Shown here: positions 6,555-62,942 of the stretch, in pieces
Layout: each line of letters starts with the position of its first letter
How positions within the stretch are numbered: the first letter of the stretch is position 1
The notes under the pieces: generated by a model
Told to the model about the DNA's origin: nothing
What the model saw: the letters and a program-made list of their open reading frames with translations, nothing else
Database searches by the model: none
Origin: Piromyces finnis finn
Lineage: Eukaryota; Fungi; Neocallimastigomycota
DNA length: 64,000 nt
Assembly: GCA_002104945.1 (NCBI GenBank)
Contig: MCFH01000069.1
Coordinates: 124,001-188,000, forward strand
Reading direction: 5' to 3'
Position numbers and translations under genes: made by a program

Positions 6555-7793
6555 TTAATGATTCTTAACAAAACATTTACGACGTTTTTCAGTCTTTTCT
6601 GATTCAACTTCACTATCGCTTTCTGGTTCAACAGCATTAGTTGGTTCTGGTTCAACAGCATTAGTTGATTCTGGTTCAACAGCATTGGTTGGTTCTGGTT
6701 CAACAGCATTAGTTGATTCTGGTTCAACAGCATTGGTTGGTTCTGGTTCAACAGCATTAGTTGATTCTGGTTCAACAGCATTGGTTGGTTCTGGTTCAAC
6801 AGCATTAGTTGATTCTGGTTCAACAGCAGCAGTTGGTTCTGGTTCAACAGTGGTAGTAGTGGTAGTGGTAGTTGTTGGTTCAACAGTAGTAGTGGTAGTG
6901 GTAGTTGTTGGTTCAACAGTAGTAGTGGTAGTGGTAGTTGTTGGTTCAACAGTAGTGGTAGTGGTAGTTGTTGGTTCAACAGTAGTAGTGGTAGTGGTAG
7001 TTGTTGGTTCAACAGTAGTGGTAGTGGTAGTAGTAATAGTAGATGGCTTTACAGTAGTAGTAGTAGTAGTAGTTGGTTTTACAGTAGTAGTAGTGGTAGT
7101 TCTTCTTACAGTAGTAGTGGTTGGTCTTACAGTGGTAGTGGTTGGTCTTACAGTGGTAGTGGTAGTAGTGATAGTGGTTGGCTTAACTATAGCTTGTGAA
7201 GTACATTTATTGGATTTTAAGTATCTCATAATGCTTTGAAGTTCTTCATTATCAAACTTATAGTAAATTTCCTCACTAGTTCCATAATCTCTATTGTATA
7301 TTCCTACTTTGTATTCCAAATTTTGATTAAATTTTCCAATATTTTCGAAGAATTCAATGGATTTAGAAGTACAAATTTTGGATTCACAAGTAGCTTGGAT
7401 TTCAGAATCAGTATTAAGGAAATAACTCAATGGACAATAGTTGTTGTTTTCATCTTTAGTACATTTAAGTCTAAGGTTTGCAATGTAGACATCTTTACCA
7501 TGGTTAGCAATATACAATGGAATTGCATTATCCCTTCTACATTCTGGAAGATTAAGGAAATTTAAGTTTTCAAATTCTTTACAAACTTTTTCATTATAGG
7601 TACTACAGATTGGATCTAATAATCTATCAGGAATATTTATGATATTAACATTACATCCATTCTTATAATTATTATATGCTTTATATATAGCATTTTCACA
7701 TTGAGTAGATAAAGGAATATCCCTTTTATTCAATGGAGAAGATAAAGCAGAGGTAATACAAATCAAAGATAAAAGTTTAGTTGAGAGTTTCAT
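6555..7793 (-). CDS. Secreted Cys-rich protein with Thr-rich and EPEPTNAV repeat stalk, ending RKCFVKNH
   Basis: 412-aa ORF with signal peptide MKLSTKLLSLICITSALS, a Cys-rich N-domain (CTKDENNNYCPLS), (T)nVEP repeats and 24-bp EP(E/S)TNAV repeats. Confidence 0.85.
   Translation of the reverse strand: MKLSTKLLSLICITSALSSPLNKRDIPLSTQCENAIYKAYNNYKNGCNVNIINIPDRLLDPICSTYNEKVCKEFENLNFLNLPECRRDNAIPLYIANHGKDVYIANLRLKCTKDENNNYCPLSYFLNTDSEIQATCESKICTSKSIEFFENIGKFNQNLEYKVGIYNRDYGTSEEIYYKFDNEELQSIMRYLKSNKCTSQAIVKPTTITTTTTTVRPTTTTVRPTTTTVRRTTTTTTVKPTTTTTTTVKPSTITTTTTTTVEPTTTTTTTTVEPTTTTTTTVEPTTTTTTTTVEPTTTTTTTTVEPTTTTTTTTTVEPEPTAAVEPESTNAVEPEPTNAVEPESTNAVEPEPTNAVEPESTNAVEPEPTNAVEPESTNAVEPEPTNAVEPESDSEVESEKTEKRRKCFVKNH
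6620..7170 (-). repeat. Coding tandem repeats (24-bp EPxTNAV units and ~27-33-bp poly-Thr-VEP units)
   Basis: ggttcaacagcatt(a/g)gttg(a/g)ttct repeated, then gtagtagtggtagtggtagttgttggttcaac repeated. Confidence 0.92.
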
Positions 7794-9419
7794 TTTATAT
7801 TTCTAGGTTTAAAAGAATATATTTTTTATATTATTTTCTATATTCAATATGAATATATATAAATAAATATTTATTTATTTATTTATTTTTAAAGAACAAA
7901 AAAGTTAGTTTTTAGTTATTTTATATAGAAAAAAAAAAATTTTTTTTAATTTATTATTTAGTAGCTTCACCACAATTAATTAAAGATAATTAATTTAATT
8001 AATTTAATATAATGAAAAAAAAAAAAGTGTATGATAAAGTAAAAAAAAAATTAATAAACAATTATATATATATACATTATGTATTCATTATATAAAGCAT
8101 TTTATCTTTTCATTTTTATTTTTTTATGTTTATTTTAACATCAATTATCAATTAAATAAAAAAAATAGAGATTAGATAAATTATACTAGCATAAAAATAA
8201 TATATAATTAATAGAGAATATATAAAAACATATTTATTATTATGTAAATACTTTTTGTTTATCAAAATCTAAAAGTGGTTATTTGATGTGGTTATTTTTT
8301 TTTTTTATATATTATATTTATTTAATATATCATTTAAATAATTAATTTATAAATTTTCTATTAATTTAGGTTTATAATTATTTCAAATTTATTAATATAT
8401 TTTTATGATAAAGAACTACATATTCGTTACATTCTTTTCAAACTACATGTATTTATATATTTACATTGTGGCTTGAATATCTAATCAAATACAATACATG
8501 CAAATATATTTCAATACATTTGACATAAATCTCACATATTTTAACATTTTCTATTTTATATATTAAAATTTTAATTTATTATATTAAGTTTTAAGTTTAT
8601 TAAATTGTAGAATTTTCCAAAATCTCAAATTATCATTATTTAATGACATTTATTTATGGCTATTTTATTTAGTGAATTTTTATATTAGTTTGTTTTCCTA
8701 AATTATCAAATTATAATTTTAAATAATAAAATATATATTTCTCTTTTGTTAAACTACTACAGAATTAGTTCATTATTGTTTAAACAAAAAATAGTTCTAA
8801 CTTTTTTTGTATTTCAAAATTTAATAAATAAAAAGTCTAGAAAATTCTTAATTTATCTAAAAAAATAAATGTATTAAAAATATATTATAATATATTATAA
8901 TATATATTAATTTCAATGTAATTTCTAATTAGATTAATTGAAAAATATCGTGTAACATTAATAAATTCTTAATTCTTCTTTTTTTCTTTTTTAATTAATT
9001 AAATAAATCTTAATTGATTGAAGAAATAAAATATTTATTTATTTATTTATTATAAATATTTATTTATTTTTAAGGAGTAAAATACTATAAAATAAAGTTT
9101 ATTATTTTTATTAATAAATAACAAAGAAAATAAATACAATATCAATTGTAGCTTATGTATAAGTCAAATTTGTTTTAAATTTCTATTCATTGATTAAATG
9201 AATGATCAAATAAATTTGTAATTAAATTAATGTATTGTATTGTAATTATTTCTATAGAATAGAATAATTAAATATAAATATCCATATATTATATATATTA
9301 TTTTAACTCTTTTGTTATTAATACTTAATGATAATAAATAAAATAATAATATGATATATATGATATTCTCAAACAATTAAATTTATTATATAAGTTTATT
9401 ATTATTTTCTACACTATAA

Positions 9420-55274: not shown

Positions 55275-56562
55275 CTAGAGAAGCATGTATAAAGCAGATA
55301 AAATAATAGTAGCAATAACATAAAAGTTTACAGTCTTAGTCATGAAACCATCACTCTTAAGATTCATTACTTCATTATTTAAATTAGTTGTAATGCTTCT
55401 GTTTTCTTGGAAATCAGTATTACTATAACTATAATCTATTGTATCAACATCAGCATTATAATTATTTTGAACAACATTATTATTTGGAGGAGCACCACCG
55501 TTAAGTATGGATAAAGCATTACCACCAATAGTGGACCAACCACCAGTTGGATCTCCAAGACATTCAGCAACAGTAACAAAATTATATCCTTGGAATATTC
55601 CATTATTAATAATATATGGTACTATTTCTTTTACAGTGTGTGGTTGAACATCATGCATTAAAACTAAATAGTTTTCTTTCTTTTTATAATATTCGTTAGT
55701 GAGAAATTCTTTAGCAGCTTTTATTCTAGCATTATGATCCTTATGTTTAACACCATTAACGACTCTGTTCCAATCATTAGTATCAGTGTCCCATTGAATA
55801 ACTTTATAGTTAAATTCTTCAAATAACATTACAGTAGCTTCATCAATTTCTCCCTTTGGAGCACGGAAATAAGTTGGGTACTTTCCTGTATTTTTATAAA
55901 CAAGGTCTTCAATTAAAGATAAGGATTCAAGTACACTTTGCTTATCAATAACACCATTTTGTTCAGGAATTTCATGATTCCAAGTATGAGATGCAATTTG
56001 GTGACCTTCTTCAGCAACTCTCTTTAAAATAGCTTGCTTTTCTGGATCAGTTGATAATTCTGGCCAATAATTATTACCATTAATAAAGAAAGTAGCATGA
56101 ATACCTGCTTCTTTTAAATAATCAAGTAATTCAGTAGTGTATTGGAATGGTCCATCATCAAATGTAAGAGCAACAGTATTTGGTTCAGTACAAGAACGAA
56201 TAAGAGTACTACTTACAGAAAGAACTTTTATAATATTTATATATAATTTAAATATAAATAGATTATATAAAATAGGTTATGAAATAAATTAATAATATTT
56301 TCCGATAATAACTTTTTTTTATAAAAAATAATTAAATATAAATAAATTTTTATATAAAAATAACATTTTATATTTAAACTATCCATTCATTTAAACATTT
56401 TATTTCTATAAATTGAATAGGTTTTCTTTTTCTTTTTTTTTTTTTTTTTTTATAATACATTAATTAAAATATTATATTTATTTCAAAGTATATTGAATAT
56501 TAAACAGTTAAATAATAATTACTTGAACAAAGTCCCAAAGCAGCAAATTTAATGAAATGCAT
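55275..56562 (-). CDS. CE4 polysaccharide (chitin) deacetylase, secreted, probable GPI anchor
   Basis: Exon 1 56562-56523, intron, exon 2 56224-55275 (329 aa). NodB motifs TFDDGP, HTWNH, RAPKG, WDTDTNDW and LMHD; hydrophobic C-terminal tail. Confidence 0.93.
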
Positions 56563-58957: not shown

Positions 58958-60700
58958 ATGAAATACCTTAATTTAATTTTCTCCATTTCATCAATTCTAT
59001 CCATTTCATCTATATCGGCTGCCCCAACGTTTACAAGTAGATGTGGTGATGGATATGGTGAATGTGATCCTGGCTTTTGTTGTAGTGAATTTGGATGGTG
59101 TGGTAAATCCGATGACTATTGCTTAATCTCTAATAACTGTCAACCAAAATTTGGTAAATGTACTGGTGGTATCTCTACAGATGATCGATGTGGTCCACAA
59201 AATGGTTATACTATATGTCCATCTGGGGAATGCTGTAGTCAGTATGGATGGTGTGGAACCGAAGGTATTCATTGCGGTACCGGATGTCAATCGGAATTTG
59301 GTCAGTGTAATAATTTTTTACAACCAACTTTAACTTTTAATACCATCCCTCCATCAACAACAACTAATATTTCTTCTCAAACTACTAAATCCAATACATC
59401 TCTTCAACCTACCTCAATCAAGAGTAAATGTGGTGTAGGATATGGGGAATGTGATCCTGGCTTTTGTTGTAGTGTGTTTGGTTGGTGTGGTCAATCTGAT
59501 GATCACTGTTTAATTTCAAATGGTTGTCAATCTGAGTTTGGTAAGTGTATTGGTGGTATCTCTACAAATAATCGTTGTGGTCCACAAAATGGTTATACTG
59601 TATGTCCATCTGGGGAATGTTGTAGTCAGTATGGATGGTGTGGAACCGAAAGTATTCATTGCGGTGCTGGTTGTCAATCCGAATTTGGTCAATGTAATAA
59701 TTCTTTAATAACTAGTACCGTCCCTAAAACCACCACCACCACCACAAATAACATTTTTAAAACTACAACCACTACTACTACAAAAAAGACTACTACAACC
59801 AAGGCTACAACAACTAAAGCTACAACCACTAGAACGACTACAACTAAAACTAGTACATCTCCTACAACAAAAAGTAGATGTGGTAAAGGATATGGTGAAT
59901 GTAGTCCAGGCTATTGTTGTAGTGAATATGGATGGTGTGGAAAAGAAGACAGCCATTGCCAACTTTCAAAAGGATGTCAATCTGAATTTGGTACATGTAC
60001 TGGACTTTCTACGAATGGTAAATGCGGACCTCAGAATGGATACACTGTATGCCCATCCGGTAAATGCTGTAGTCAGTATGGATGGTGTGGAACCGAAAAT
60101 ACTCATTGCGGTATTGGATGCCAATCAGAATTTGGAAAATGTTCTACTCTTAAGGAATGTTCCCCAAAAAATAGTTACGGAACTATTGACAAAGAAGCAT
60201 TACCAAATGCACCATACATTTGGAGCTTCCTTTTAAGTAAAATTGAAAATGCTTATGGAGCTGCCGGTATGATTGGAAATCTTTATGCCGAATCTCGTTT
60301 AAGATCAAATGATCTTGAAGGCATTTACGAAAAAAGTCTTGGAAAAACTGATGAACAATATACCAAGGAAGTTGATAATGGAACATACAAAAAATTTACA
60401 ACTGATTCAGCTGGATATGGTTTAGTACAATGGACTTCAAGTAAACGTAAACAGGGTCTTCTTGAATATGCTAAAGAGCAAAAAAAGAGTATTGGTGATC
60501 TTCAAATGCAACTTGACTACTTCTGGATAGAACTTAATAATAATTATAAAGACGTTCTTAGTGCTTTAAAAAGTGCTAAATCAGTTAAGGAAGCTTCTAA
60601 TAAAGTCGTCTTAGAGTATGAAATCCCTAAAGACCGAAGTAACAGTGTATTAGAGAAGAGAGCCAAATTTGGAGAAATGTTAAAATTAGCATGTAATTAA
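58958..60700 (+). CDS. Secreted 6x hevein/CBM18 chitin-binding protein with a C-terminal phage-tail-lysozyme-like domain
   Basis: 580 aa, intronless, with signal peptide. Six CG-x-C-x4-CCS-x-(F/Y)GWCG modules in three pairs. C-domain IWSFL..GAAGMIGNLYAES..AGYGLVQWT..RKQGL..DLQMQLDY..EL..A..V..EYEIP. Confidence 0.92.
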   Translation: MKYLNLIFSISSILSISSISAAPTFTSRCGDGYGECDPGFCCSEFGWCGKSDDYCLISNNCQPKFGKCTGGISTDDRCGPQNGYTICPSGECCSQYGWCGTEGIHCGTGCQSEFGQCNNFLQPTLTFNTIPPSTTTNISSQTTKSNTSLQPTSIKSKCGVGYGECDPGFCCSVFGWCGQSDDHCLISNGCQSEFGKCIGGISTNNRCGPQNGYTVCPSGECCSQYGWCGTESIHCGAGCQSEFGQCNNSLITSTVPKTTTTTTNNIFKTTTTTTTKKTTTTKATTTKATTTRTTTTKTSTSPTTKSRCGKGYGECSPGYCCSEYGWCGKEDSHCQLSKGCQSEFGTCTGLSTNGKCGPQNGYTVCPSGKCCSQYGWCGTENTHCGIGCQSEFGKCSTLKECSPKNSYGTIDKEALPNAPYIWSFLLSKIENAYGAAGMIGNLYAESRLRSNDLEGIYEKSLGKTDEQYTKEVDNGTYKKFTTDSAGYGLVQWTSSKRKQGLLEYAKEQKKSIGDLQMQLDYFWIELNNNYKDVLSALKSAKSVKEASNKVVLEYEIPKDRSNSVLEKRAKFGEMLKLACN

Positions 60701-61842
60701 ATCTAAGGAAAACTATGTAAATAATATACATATATCTAAAAAGATTCTACTAAATTTATTAATATTTTAATAATTTAGTTATAATATAAATAATCAAATA
60801 TATATATAAAAACAACACAGTAGTATAATAAATAATTAATTATTGATAATAATATAAAATTTATTATTTTTATATTAATATTAATAACTATATACTTAAT
60901 AAAAAAAAATAATAAATGTAAAATAATAATATAAAAAAAAAATAAAATAAAAAATAAATAAAAGTAAAGAATGAAAAATAAAAAAAAAAATTAAAATTCT
61001 TTTGTAAAGATTATATACCTTTTTTTAAGTTTTTATTTATAATTTTTCATTTATATCTTTATTCTTACTAAAGGACAAAATATTAAAATGACCGTAATGT
61101 TTTATATATATTCATTAGTATTTAATAAATAGTATTTAAATTAATATTCCTTTTTAGAAATTATATTTAATATAAATTTTAAATAAAATCACAAAAATCT
61201 TTATTTTTAATAATAAAGGAAAGTAATTTATATAAAAATATTTGATAATTATTATATACATTTATAAAAAATAAAAATAATTCGATTTCTCTTTTCAAAG
61301 ATTATTAGAAAAGAAATTGAAGGAAGATATTTATTAAAAATAATGATTTGTAAATAGAACAATTTGTGTAGAAATTAGAATTTACTTTATGGAATTTTTA
61401 CAAAATTTCAAATAAATGTAAACAGAAATTCATTATTATTTATAATTTTGTCTCAATACATGTTCTTTACAAACTATTTTCCGGTTTTCAATTATAAAAC
61501 ATAATAGATTTATCAATGTTTTATTAAAATATGAAACTATAAGTATTTCTTTATTTTCTTCATTTTAAAAAAAAAAAAAAAAAAAAAGATTAAATATTCT
61601 ATTTGTTTCTATTATTTCTTTTAATATAGTATAGAACTATATCGTTTTAATATAATATATCTTTCTTTATATTATTTTCTCTAGATAATAATAATATAAA
61701 ATATATAAAAAATAACAATATAAAAATGAAATTAAATGTGATTTTTCAAGTGTTAACATTCAAATTTTTAATAATTTATTATCTAAACTTTATATTTACT
61801 GGAAAATTGATCCTGTTTAATTTAATTTTTCATTAAAGTACA

Positions 61843-62195: not shown

Positions 62196-62942
62196 TTACA
62201 TATTAAATTTATTGAATATATTTAATAGATTTAATTTAAATATTATTAAATTCTTTATAAGATTTAGCATCTTTATATAAGAACAACAACAATAAAAAAT
62301 TCCAAGAATTGCAATAGAACTCAAAAATCCCAACCAGTACAAAAAACGTATAGCAGAATCTAATTCATTATTTTCATCTTCATTCATAGGTATGTAGCAC
62401 TCTCCATTACATTCACCTTCTGAATAATCATCCCTATTTACACAAGGATCTCCAATAAATTTTCCCTTACGACCATATCGAAGACGTGTGATAATATTAT
62501 TTTCATTGAATTTACAAGTATGGTTTACACATTTATTTGTAAAACATTGAGCATCTTTATTACATTCAGTTGAAGTATTATTGCTTATAGTAGGAGTATG
62601 ATACATAACATATGGATGCAAAATATACCTGTTGAATTGGGTTTCCGAACGATTACATATTTTGCAATCTGTATTGTTGTCGTTTAATCGTAAAGTATTG
62701 GTATTAATTGGAATTTCAATAAATGGTAAATTAAAATATCTGTCAGCTTTAAAATAATATGAACCTTTACATATGGTTGTATCACAAAATACGCATTCAA
62801 TAGAATTAGTAGTCACATTTAAATGATAAATATATTCATAAGGAATATTATCTGATTCAATAGTTATAATATGGGTATATCCATTTTGAAAAAACAAAAT
62901 ACAAAATATATATGTAAACACCACGAAAATAATGTTTTTCAG
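62196..62942 (-). pseudogene. Decaying paralog of 29510-30280
   Basis: ATG has become CTG (62942), with in-frame deletions, Cys>Tyr in DDYSEGEC, and a ~10-bp deletion shifting the C-terminus. Confidence 0.82.

Follow-up and report, generated by a model that had tools for sequence, protein, structure and literature searches.

A Piromyces protein that joins six hevein modules to a phage-type lysozyme domain is a candidate tethered peptidoglycan hydrolase

The Phage_lysozyme2 family (PF18013) includes the N-terminal domain of gp13, a protein of the phi29 tail tip in which this lysozyme-like domain is fused to an M23 peptidase (PDB 3csr/3csq). gp13 was crystallised with oligomers of N-acetylglucosamine (GlcNAc), and its family was without a CAZy number in 2023, "due to a lack of functional information" (PMC10394673). 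For PrgK, an enterococcal protein, mass spectrometry of muropeptides established that its gp13-like domain is a true hydrolytic muramidase (bioRxiv 10.1101/2024.02.15.580431), and this is the only gp13-like domain shown to be one. In a recent survey, Phage_lysozyme2 is one of the catalytic domains named for endolysins of gut phages. Other families (GH24, GH25 and GH184) already include fungal muramidases that are secreted and carry wall-binding modules, and one line of a preprint mentions the presence of PF18013 in Piromyces finnis, describing it as a phage protein "without clear function in fungi". Here we describe a gene at positions 58958-60700 (+) of a 64,000-nucleotide stretch of DNA from the anaerobic gut fungus Piromyces finnis (Neocallimastigomycota; contig MCFH01000069.1, positions 124,001 to 188,000 of the forward strand; the whole stretch is referred to as the window, and coordinates are those of the window unless another locus is named). 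The gene encodes six hevein-type chitin-binding modules (CBM18) joined to a Phage_lysozyme2 domain. We consider that its product is a peptidoglycan hydrolase that is tethered by binding to GlcNAc polymers and is used against bacteria, with a probability of about 0.6.

The gene is an intact, intronless open reading frame (ORF) encoding 580 amino acids (aa), with 0 internal stops. Only two Pfam families were identified in the whole protein, Chitin_bind_1 and Phage_lysozyme2. The latter forms the gp13-type lysozyme-like catalytic domain (aa 417-580, 60206..60697, + strand), which is recognised by Pfam, PHROG, AlphaFold2 and Foldseek. The Pfam match covers residues 417-570 and scores 95.1 bits (cutoff 28.2), and the PHROGs match is to phrog_20388, annotated as "endolysin" (E 4e-51). 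A search of the domain against NCBIfam gave no match. A first reading of the sequence (the original prediction) had assigned the domain to this family from the motifs GNLYAES and GYGLVQWT; both motifs are found in the domain, and the Pfam score and the gp13-like fold bear out the assignment. The codon of Glu445, the putative catalytic acid, is at 60290..60292 (+), where the same reading had placed it. Glu445 aligns with Glu45, the proposed catalytic residue of gp13, and 99% of bacterial homologues have Glu at this position. In an AlphaFold2 model of the domain (predicted local distance difference test score, pLDDT, 97.1; predicted template modelling score, pTM, 0.92), Glu445 is at the end of the model's helix 28-42, just as Glu45 of gp13 ends helix 2.

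A profile built from 101 homologues was used to search the PDB, and the sole significant family was gp13 (E 1.3e-10). gp13 also ranked first when the model was compared to solved structures with Foldseek (3csr/3csq, probability 1.0, template modelling (TM) score 0.66-0.73), and the best clusters matched in the AlphaFold Database are mostly named as "phage tail lysozyme domain" proteins. Next in rank was the Kionochaeta GH184 muramidase 8b2e (probability 0.92, TM score 0.49/0.58, 15% identity), in which the equivalent Glu41 is essential for catalysis (PMC10394673). GH184 has been described as a family distinct from gp13 (PMC10394673), and we rejected membership of GH184 because the profile of 101 homologues matches no GH184 chain at E up to 10. 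It is nearly certain that the domain belongs to the gp13/PF18013 family and not to GH184. Weaker structural matches were to lambda lysozyme and to chitinases of GH23 (Ralstonia chitinase) and GH19 (probability 0.2-0.4, TM score 0.34-0.46). These are similarities at the level of the superfamily only, and membership of a lysozyme-fold chitinase family (GH19 or the Ralstonia type of GH23) was also rejected. Although the domain shares Pfam family, fold and aligned catalytic Glu with the N-terminal domain of gp13, the two are just ~21-23% identical, and the subfamily to which the Piromyces domain belongs has an extra insert of ~25 residues that forms two short helices (aa ~455-480). The insert sits in the lobe that putatively sets specificity. 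The proteins also differ in context, as gp13 is a phage tail tip component with an M23 peptidase whereas the Piromyces protein is eukaryotic, predicted to be secreted and fused to hevein modules.

Much closer relatives were identified in gut bacteria and their phages. Hundreds of metagenomic proteins contain a copy with 50-60% identity, accompanied by other catalytic domains (Amidase_2, CHAP, NlpC/P60, M23) and by wall-binding modules (LysM, SH3_3, CW_7, SPOR, PG_binding_1). An exhaustive search recovered 4283 cluster representatives at E up to 0.001. Prokaryotic genomes, one per species, were scanned with an alignment profile, and 517 stretches encoding a relative were confirmed; the same scan with a single protein as the query gave no match. 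The best 80 of the 517 are overwhelmingly from Lachnospiraceae, Oscillospiraceae, Ruminococcus, Butyrivibrio and other Clostridia, and many of these 80 come from metagenome-assembled genomes (MAGs) of goat, sheep, deer and yak gut. Among sequenced phages, the nearest relatives are encoded by FP_Lagaffe of Faecalibacterium (55.6%), by a phage from lemur gut and by Fontainebleau of Acutalibacter (50%). In FP_Lagaffe (gp31) and Fontainebleau the domain is the N-terminus of an endolysin whose gene is beside a holin gene. Near-typical copies of the domain (51-59% identity) also occur in MAGs labelled as Succinivibrionaceae, Muribaculaceae, Alistipes and Thermoguttaceae, which are not Firmicutes; spread by phages or binning errors could be the cause.

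Conservation was scored over the 49 alignment positions at which 85% or more of the 91 homologues from bacteria and phages agree. The Piromyces domain retains 47 of these, compared with a bacterial mean of 46, and thus we see no sign that the active site has been remodelled. Just two substitutions are typical of the fungal sequences, Arg447, which is two residues past the catalytic Glu, and Glu454 (codon at 60317..60319, +), which is Glu in 7 of 8 fungal copies. In bacterial copies the latter position is Gln in 82% and Glu in 12%. It aligns with Gln54 of gp13, which superposes on Asp66 of KsGH184 (PMC10394673). Values of dN/dS for the domain (Nei-Gojobori) are 0.25-0.48, and this copy of the gene is under purifying selection. 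The domain is of the same subfamily as that in endolysins of Oscillospirales phages and autolysins of rumen Lachnospiraceae and Oscillospiraceae, with 50-60% identity and 47 of the 49 conserved positions in common. There, however, its partners are Amidase_2 or CHAP together with LysM, SH3, CW_7 or PG_binding modules, and the FP_Lagaffe and Fontainebleau endolysins act inside the cell with a holin, whereas the Piromyces protein has a signal peptide, a CBM18 array and no other catalytic domain.

The N-terminal part of the protein is of fungal character. The predicted signal peptide (aa 1-22, 58958..59023, +; MKYLNLIFSISSILSISSISAA) was read by eye from a Lys near its N-terminus, a hydrophobic core and a SAA|P cleavage site. 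The assignment rests on the sequence and on leaders of the same type in Piromyces paralogues, and agrees with the original prediction. Pfam identifies six stretches of Chitin_bind_1 (PF00187; 176 bits in total, cutoff 27.8), and all six modules have the 8-Cys pattern. They are arranged as pair 1 (A1 aa 29-68, B1 aa 78-117; 59042..59308, +), pair 2 (A2 aa 158-197, B2 aa 207-246; 59429..59695, +) and pair 3 (A3 aa 308-347, B3 aa 356-395; 59879..60142, +). Because A-type modules are 65-82% identical to one another and B-type modules 85-93% (e.g., A2 and A1 82%, B2 and B1 93%), the array is best described as three tandem A-B pairs, the arrangement that had been read from the sequence alone. Pairs 1 and 2 are separated by a Thr/Ser/Pro-rich linker of 40 residues (aa 118-157, 59309..59428, +; 10 Thr and 7 Ser in the 38 residues of aa 120-157) and pairs 2 and 3 by a mucin-like poly-Thr linker of 61 residues (aa 247-307, 59696..59878, +; 33 Thr in the 59 residues of aa 249-307). 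The linkers are probably O-glycosylated. A CCS-x-(F/Y)-G-W-CG face is present in each of the six modules. From the structures of hevein and wheat germ agglutinin, we take the Ser and the two aromatic residues of this motif to be the GlcNAc-binding face. Trp53 and Trp55 of the amphioxus protein BbtPGRP3 served as a further basis of comparison for this assignment (PMC4610682).

A short connector, read directly from the sequence (60143..60205, +), links pair 3 to the catalytic domain and contains Cys401 (60158-60160). Together with Cys579 (60692-60694) this residue brackets the catalytic domain, and the same two cysteines are found in the P. finnis orthologue described below and in P0002. Where the Piromyces protein has Cys579, Tyr or Phe is found in bacterial homologues. 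Our guess is that a Cys401-Cys579 disulfide was added as a staple in the secreted fungal form.

Two kinds of characterised eukaryotic protein are built along similar lines. The GH184 enzymes of Kionochaeta and Thermothielavioides and the GH24 enzyme of Trichophaea saccata are likewise secreted fungal proteins with a lysozyme fold, one essential Glu and a wall- or carbohydrate-binding module (PMC10394673). These are enzymes of Dikarya that carry an SH3-like wall-binding domain and have been shown biochemically to be muramidases, whereas the Piromyces protein carries CBM18 and its activity is predicted. Amphioxus BbtPGRP3 has the same design, with a eukaryotic hevein-type module next to a peptidoglycan-cleaving domain (PMC4610682). 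Its hevein-like module binds chitin and makes the amidase 5-fold more active on Lys-type peptidoglycan (PMC4610682). BbtPGRP3 differs in being an amidase (PGRP) rather than a glycosidase, in having one module instead of six, and in being an animal protein that was not derived by transfer.

Relatives in other fungal sequences form one gene family and one clade with the gene in the window. At least five paralogues are present in Piromyces sp. E2, of which four are annotated only as "CBM18 protein" (OUM56466.1, OUM58038.1, OUM65878.1 and OUM61871.1), and the P. finnis members of the clade are ORX42630.1 and ORX49608.1. The relatives in E2 and P. finnis carry 1-3 hevein modules (1-2 in the E2 fusions), whereas the copy in the window has six, as three duplicated pairs, and a long poly-Thr linker. 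No relative with six modules was identified in the protein database searched. The product of the window gene (P0001) is present in the public protein collection only as a 176-aa C-terminal fragment, and thus the six-module architecture is not represented there. ORX42630.1 is part of a syntenic orthologue (MCFH01000062.1, locus positions 7515-8616) that encodes a signal peptide, 3 hevein modules and the lysozyme domain. This orthologue has two in-frame TGA codons (locus positions 7995 and 8433), at both of which relatives have Trp, and its annotation is split into two fragments; either it has recently become a pseudogene or its sequence contains errors. In OUM61871.1 (P0241) the motifs read GNLYVKS, where Lys takes the place of the catalytic Glu, and GLFQWA, and only 43 of the 49 conserved positions are retained. 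Judged from these substitutions, it may be a pseudoenzyme.

The original prediction held that the domain had been acquired horizontally from gut Firmicutes or their phages, and the phylogeny agrees. In a careful maximum-likelihood tree (95 rows, LG+C20), all 11 fungal CBM18-linked domains (11/11) fall on one side of a single branch (support 97/87, recovered in 100% of bootstrap trees), and the inner ten are united with support of 100/99. Bacteria and phages contain a very large and diverse family, whereas the fungal clade is small and single, so the direction of transfer was into the fungus. A protein from a phage-like operon (P0009) was sister to the fungal clade in a quick tree (87). This placement was not confirmed by the careful tree, and the donor is named only as Clostridia or their phages. 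A candidate second eukaryotic acquisition was also dropped. This is P0319, on an ENA metagenome contig (627-2186), a secreted SH3_3-Phage_lysozyme2-SH3_3 protein with an extra C-terminal region; a regular expression had found a hevein-like Cys motif in the protein. Its coding GC content is ~50%, with flanks of 28-32%. Because of this coding GC content, the lack of a Pfam hevein module and its grouping with Ruminococcus and Oscillospiraceae, we left it out of the fungal family.

The GC content at third codon positions (GC3) is 0.20 in the catalytic part of the gene, 0.19 in the hevein part and 0.14 in the neighbouring fungal gene, compared with 0.49-0.73 in bacterial and phage relatives. The locus is syntenic with P. 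finnis MCFH01000062.1, where an upstream neighbour that is 73% identical is followed by the lysozyme-domain orthologue. Ameliorated GC3 and synteny both indicate that the gene is old and is not a contaminant. That the domain was transferred is nearly certain, and these sequences point to one old transfer from rumen or gut Clostridia or their phages, followed by duplication.

Transcripts were sought in three runs that share one organism label. The runs are only guessed to be RNA libraries, and contig depth is a poor measure of expression. Contigs from these probable RNA runs cover 58967-59650 and 60044-60717 without splice joints, and the only breaks (59650-60044) are attributed to the internal repeats and the poly-Thr linker. 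The depth of contig words over the ORF is ~950-1750, 270-340 and ~5 in the three runs, with 0-17 in the flanks. This pattern of coverage points to a transcript that is unspliced and limited to the ORF. The catalytic Glu and the open frame, which the original prediction had reported as retained, thus belong to a gene that is also transcribed. The spread between runs is ~300-fold (about 1700, 300 and 5, unnormalised), and may mean that expression depends on condition.

The gene is on a contig of 754 kb, and GC content is 37% in the ORF and 13-14% in the surrounding intergenic DNA. Upstream, a divergent ORF (55278-56276, -) encodes a CE4 polysaccharide deacetylase; among solved structures, chitin deacetylases of fungi are its best relatives (E 1e-34 to 1e-27). 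The predicted ORF of this neighbour begins only at 55829, and an intron or another start is therefore probable. Its pairing with a lysozyme gene is also kept at the P. finnis locus MCFH01000062.1. Downstream, an ORF of 242 aa (62196-62924, -) has no Pfam match. We identified no genes for uptake or catabolism of muropeptides adjoining the lysozyme gene. The surroundings of the lysozyme gene are thus those of a fungal chromosome, with a chitin deacetylase gene as neighbour, and its product has a predicted eukaryotic signal peptide. There is no holin-adjoining lysis cassette, and we rejected phage endolysin as its functional class, although its descent is from endolysin-type domains.

We propose the following sequence of events. 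The gp13-type domain entered the fungal lineage once, long ago, from gut or rumen Clostridia or their phages, in which the same subfamily serves as the N-terminal catalytic domain of endolysins and multi-domain autolysins. A native hevein/CBM18 array would then have replaced the bacterial wall-binding modules (LysM, SH3, CW_7, PG_binding, SPOR), and in the window copy it would have expanded to three A-B pairs on extended Thr-rich linkers. With Glu445 as general acid, the enzyme would cut the backbone of peptidoglycan between N-acetylmuramic acid (MurNAc) and GlcNAc, a prediction drawn from the endolysin role of the family and from the PrgK result. Peptidoglycan is quite probably the substrate of the domain, and we hold this part of the proposal with more confidence than the whole. 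The six GlcNAc-binding modules would hold the enzyme on GlcNAc polymers, most likely the chitin wall of the fungus itself. CBM18 arrays in these fungi are also fused to leucine-rich repeat (LRR) proteins, CotH, CE4 deacetylases, serpins and CAP proteins, and their occurrence on many unrelated extracellular partners suggests that they generally serve to tether proteins to the chitin wall of the fungus itself. Gram-positive wall glycan may be a further anchor for the array. Wheat germ agglutinin, which is built of hevein modules, stains Gram-positive walls. Given this staining and the effect of the BbtPGRP3 module, direct targeting of bacterial walls is also plausible.

Clostridia that settle on the thallus would be lysed. 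Rumen Clostridia are themselves reported, in work cited in PMC7200989, to lyse fungal walls with chitinases, which would give an ecological reason for a wall-mounted lysin taken from their phages. A more specific form of the proposal is that a phage endolysin domain was domesticated as antibacterial armour of the cell surface, with the six-module hevein array as its tether, and that it lyses the hosts of the source phages (Lachnospiraceae and Oscillospiraceae). We put this forward tentatively and regard it as somewhat doubtful.

Several points weigh against an antibacterial peptidoglycan hydrolase. No member of the subfamily, fungal or bacterial, appears to have been assayed, and the gp13 family as a whole was still unnumbered in CAZy in 2023. 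Activity on chitin is possible, since the gp13 crystals contained GlcNAc oligomers and there are chitinases with a lysozyme fold, and the chitin deacetylase neighbour could point to remodelling of the fungus's own wall. Run type was guessed as RNA, and contig depth is only a rough guide to expression. The loss of Glu in OUM61871.1 and the two stops in the P. finnis orthologue indicate that the family is dispensable in some lineages.

In the first alternative, the lysozyme fold was repurposed for the fungus's own wall, with chitinase- or chitosanase-like remodelling during growth, zoospore release or encystment, and CBM18 targets the enzyme to chitin. CBM18 in plants and fungi is typically found on chitin-active enzymes, and CE4-CBM18 fusions are common in these fungi; CBM18 nevertheless also occurs on partners without action on chitin. 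The neighbour conserved in synteny encodes a chitin deacetylase of fungal type, and gp13 binds GlcNAc oligomers in crystals. The structural matches to the GH23 Ralstonia chitinase and the GH19 chitinases would also fit, but they are weak (probability 0.2-0.4, TM score <0.5). Arg447 and Glu454 are near the active site and typical of the fungal clade, but Glu454 is also found in 12% of bacterial copies, and 47 of the 49 conserved positions are the same as in domains that work in phage endolysins. We consider this alternative unlikely.

About equally improbable is a peptidoglycan hydrolase used for feeding, which would digest the wall debris of gut bacteria to GlcNAc, MurNAc and peptides, with CBM18 binding the GlcNAc glycan. 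The evidence for peptidoglycan as the substrate applies here just as it does to an antibacterial enzyme, hevein-like domains can boost action on peptidoglycan, and the depths of ~1700, 300 and 5 in the three runs may be a sign that growth condition regulates the gene. However, the genes adjoining the lysozyme gene include none seen for muropeptide uptake or catabolism, and a multivalent tether fits display at the surface better than it fits a diffusing digestive enzyme. Feeding and antibacterial use differ in purpose alone, and sequence cannot separate the two.

It is very unlikely that the protein is a non-enzymatic lectin, in which the hevein modules do the work and the lysozyme domain is a relic, or that the gene is a pseudogene in the making. 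Lys replaces Glu in OUM61871.1, which keeps only 43 of the 49 conserved positions, and two in-frame TGA codons interrupt the P. finnis orthologue, but the window copy retains its Glu and 47 of the 49 positions in an intact, transcribed ORF with dN/dS <0.5. Bacterial or phage contamination or a chimeric assembly, which the lack of introns and the bacterial type of the catalytic domain might suggest, can practically be dismissed given the 754-kb contig, the flanking fungal intergenic DNA of 13-14% GC, a GC3 of 0.20 that matches the native part of the gene, the in-frame fusion to fungal hevein modules, the P. finnis synteny and the presence of the gene in three sequencing runs with the same organism label.

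The original prediction also took the architecture to be new, which is true in part. In the literature searched we found nothing specific that describes or assays a CBM18-lysozyme fusion, or an antibacterial lysozyme of anaerobic fungi. The transfer itself is, however, in the preprint mentioned above, and shorter CBM18 versions in E2 are annotated. Given these versions and the secreted fungal muramidases already known, the six-module protein is a variant and not a new kind.

If the protein is an antibacterial peptidoglycan hydrolase, there would be a function for a transfer that so far has been listed only as a phage protein without a clear one in fungi. The fungal proteins would then be the first members from eukaryotes of a glycoside hydrolase family to which CAZy had assigned no number as of 2023, and would provide the biochemistry of gp13-type lysozymes with a eukaryotic branch and a convenient secreted form. 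Muramidases of fungi have practical applications, and the lysins from which this domain descends are those of anaerobic gut Clostridia. The protein would also be a case in which a eukaryote re-tools a phage lysin by swapping in its own lectin modules for bacterial wall-binding modules, with relevance to competition between fungi and bacteria in the rumen.

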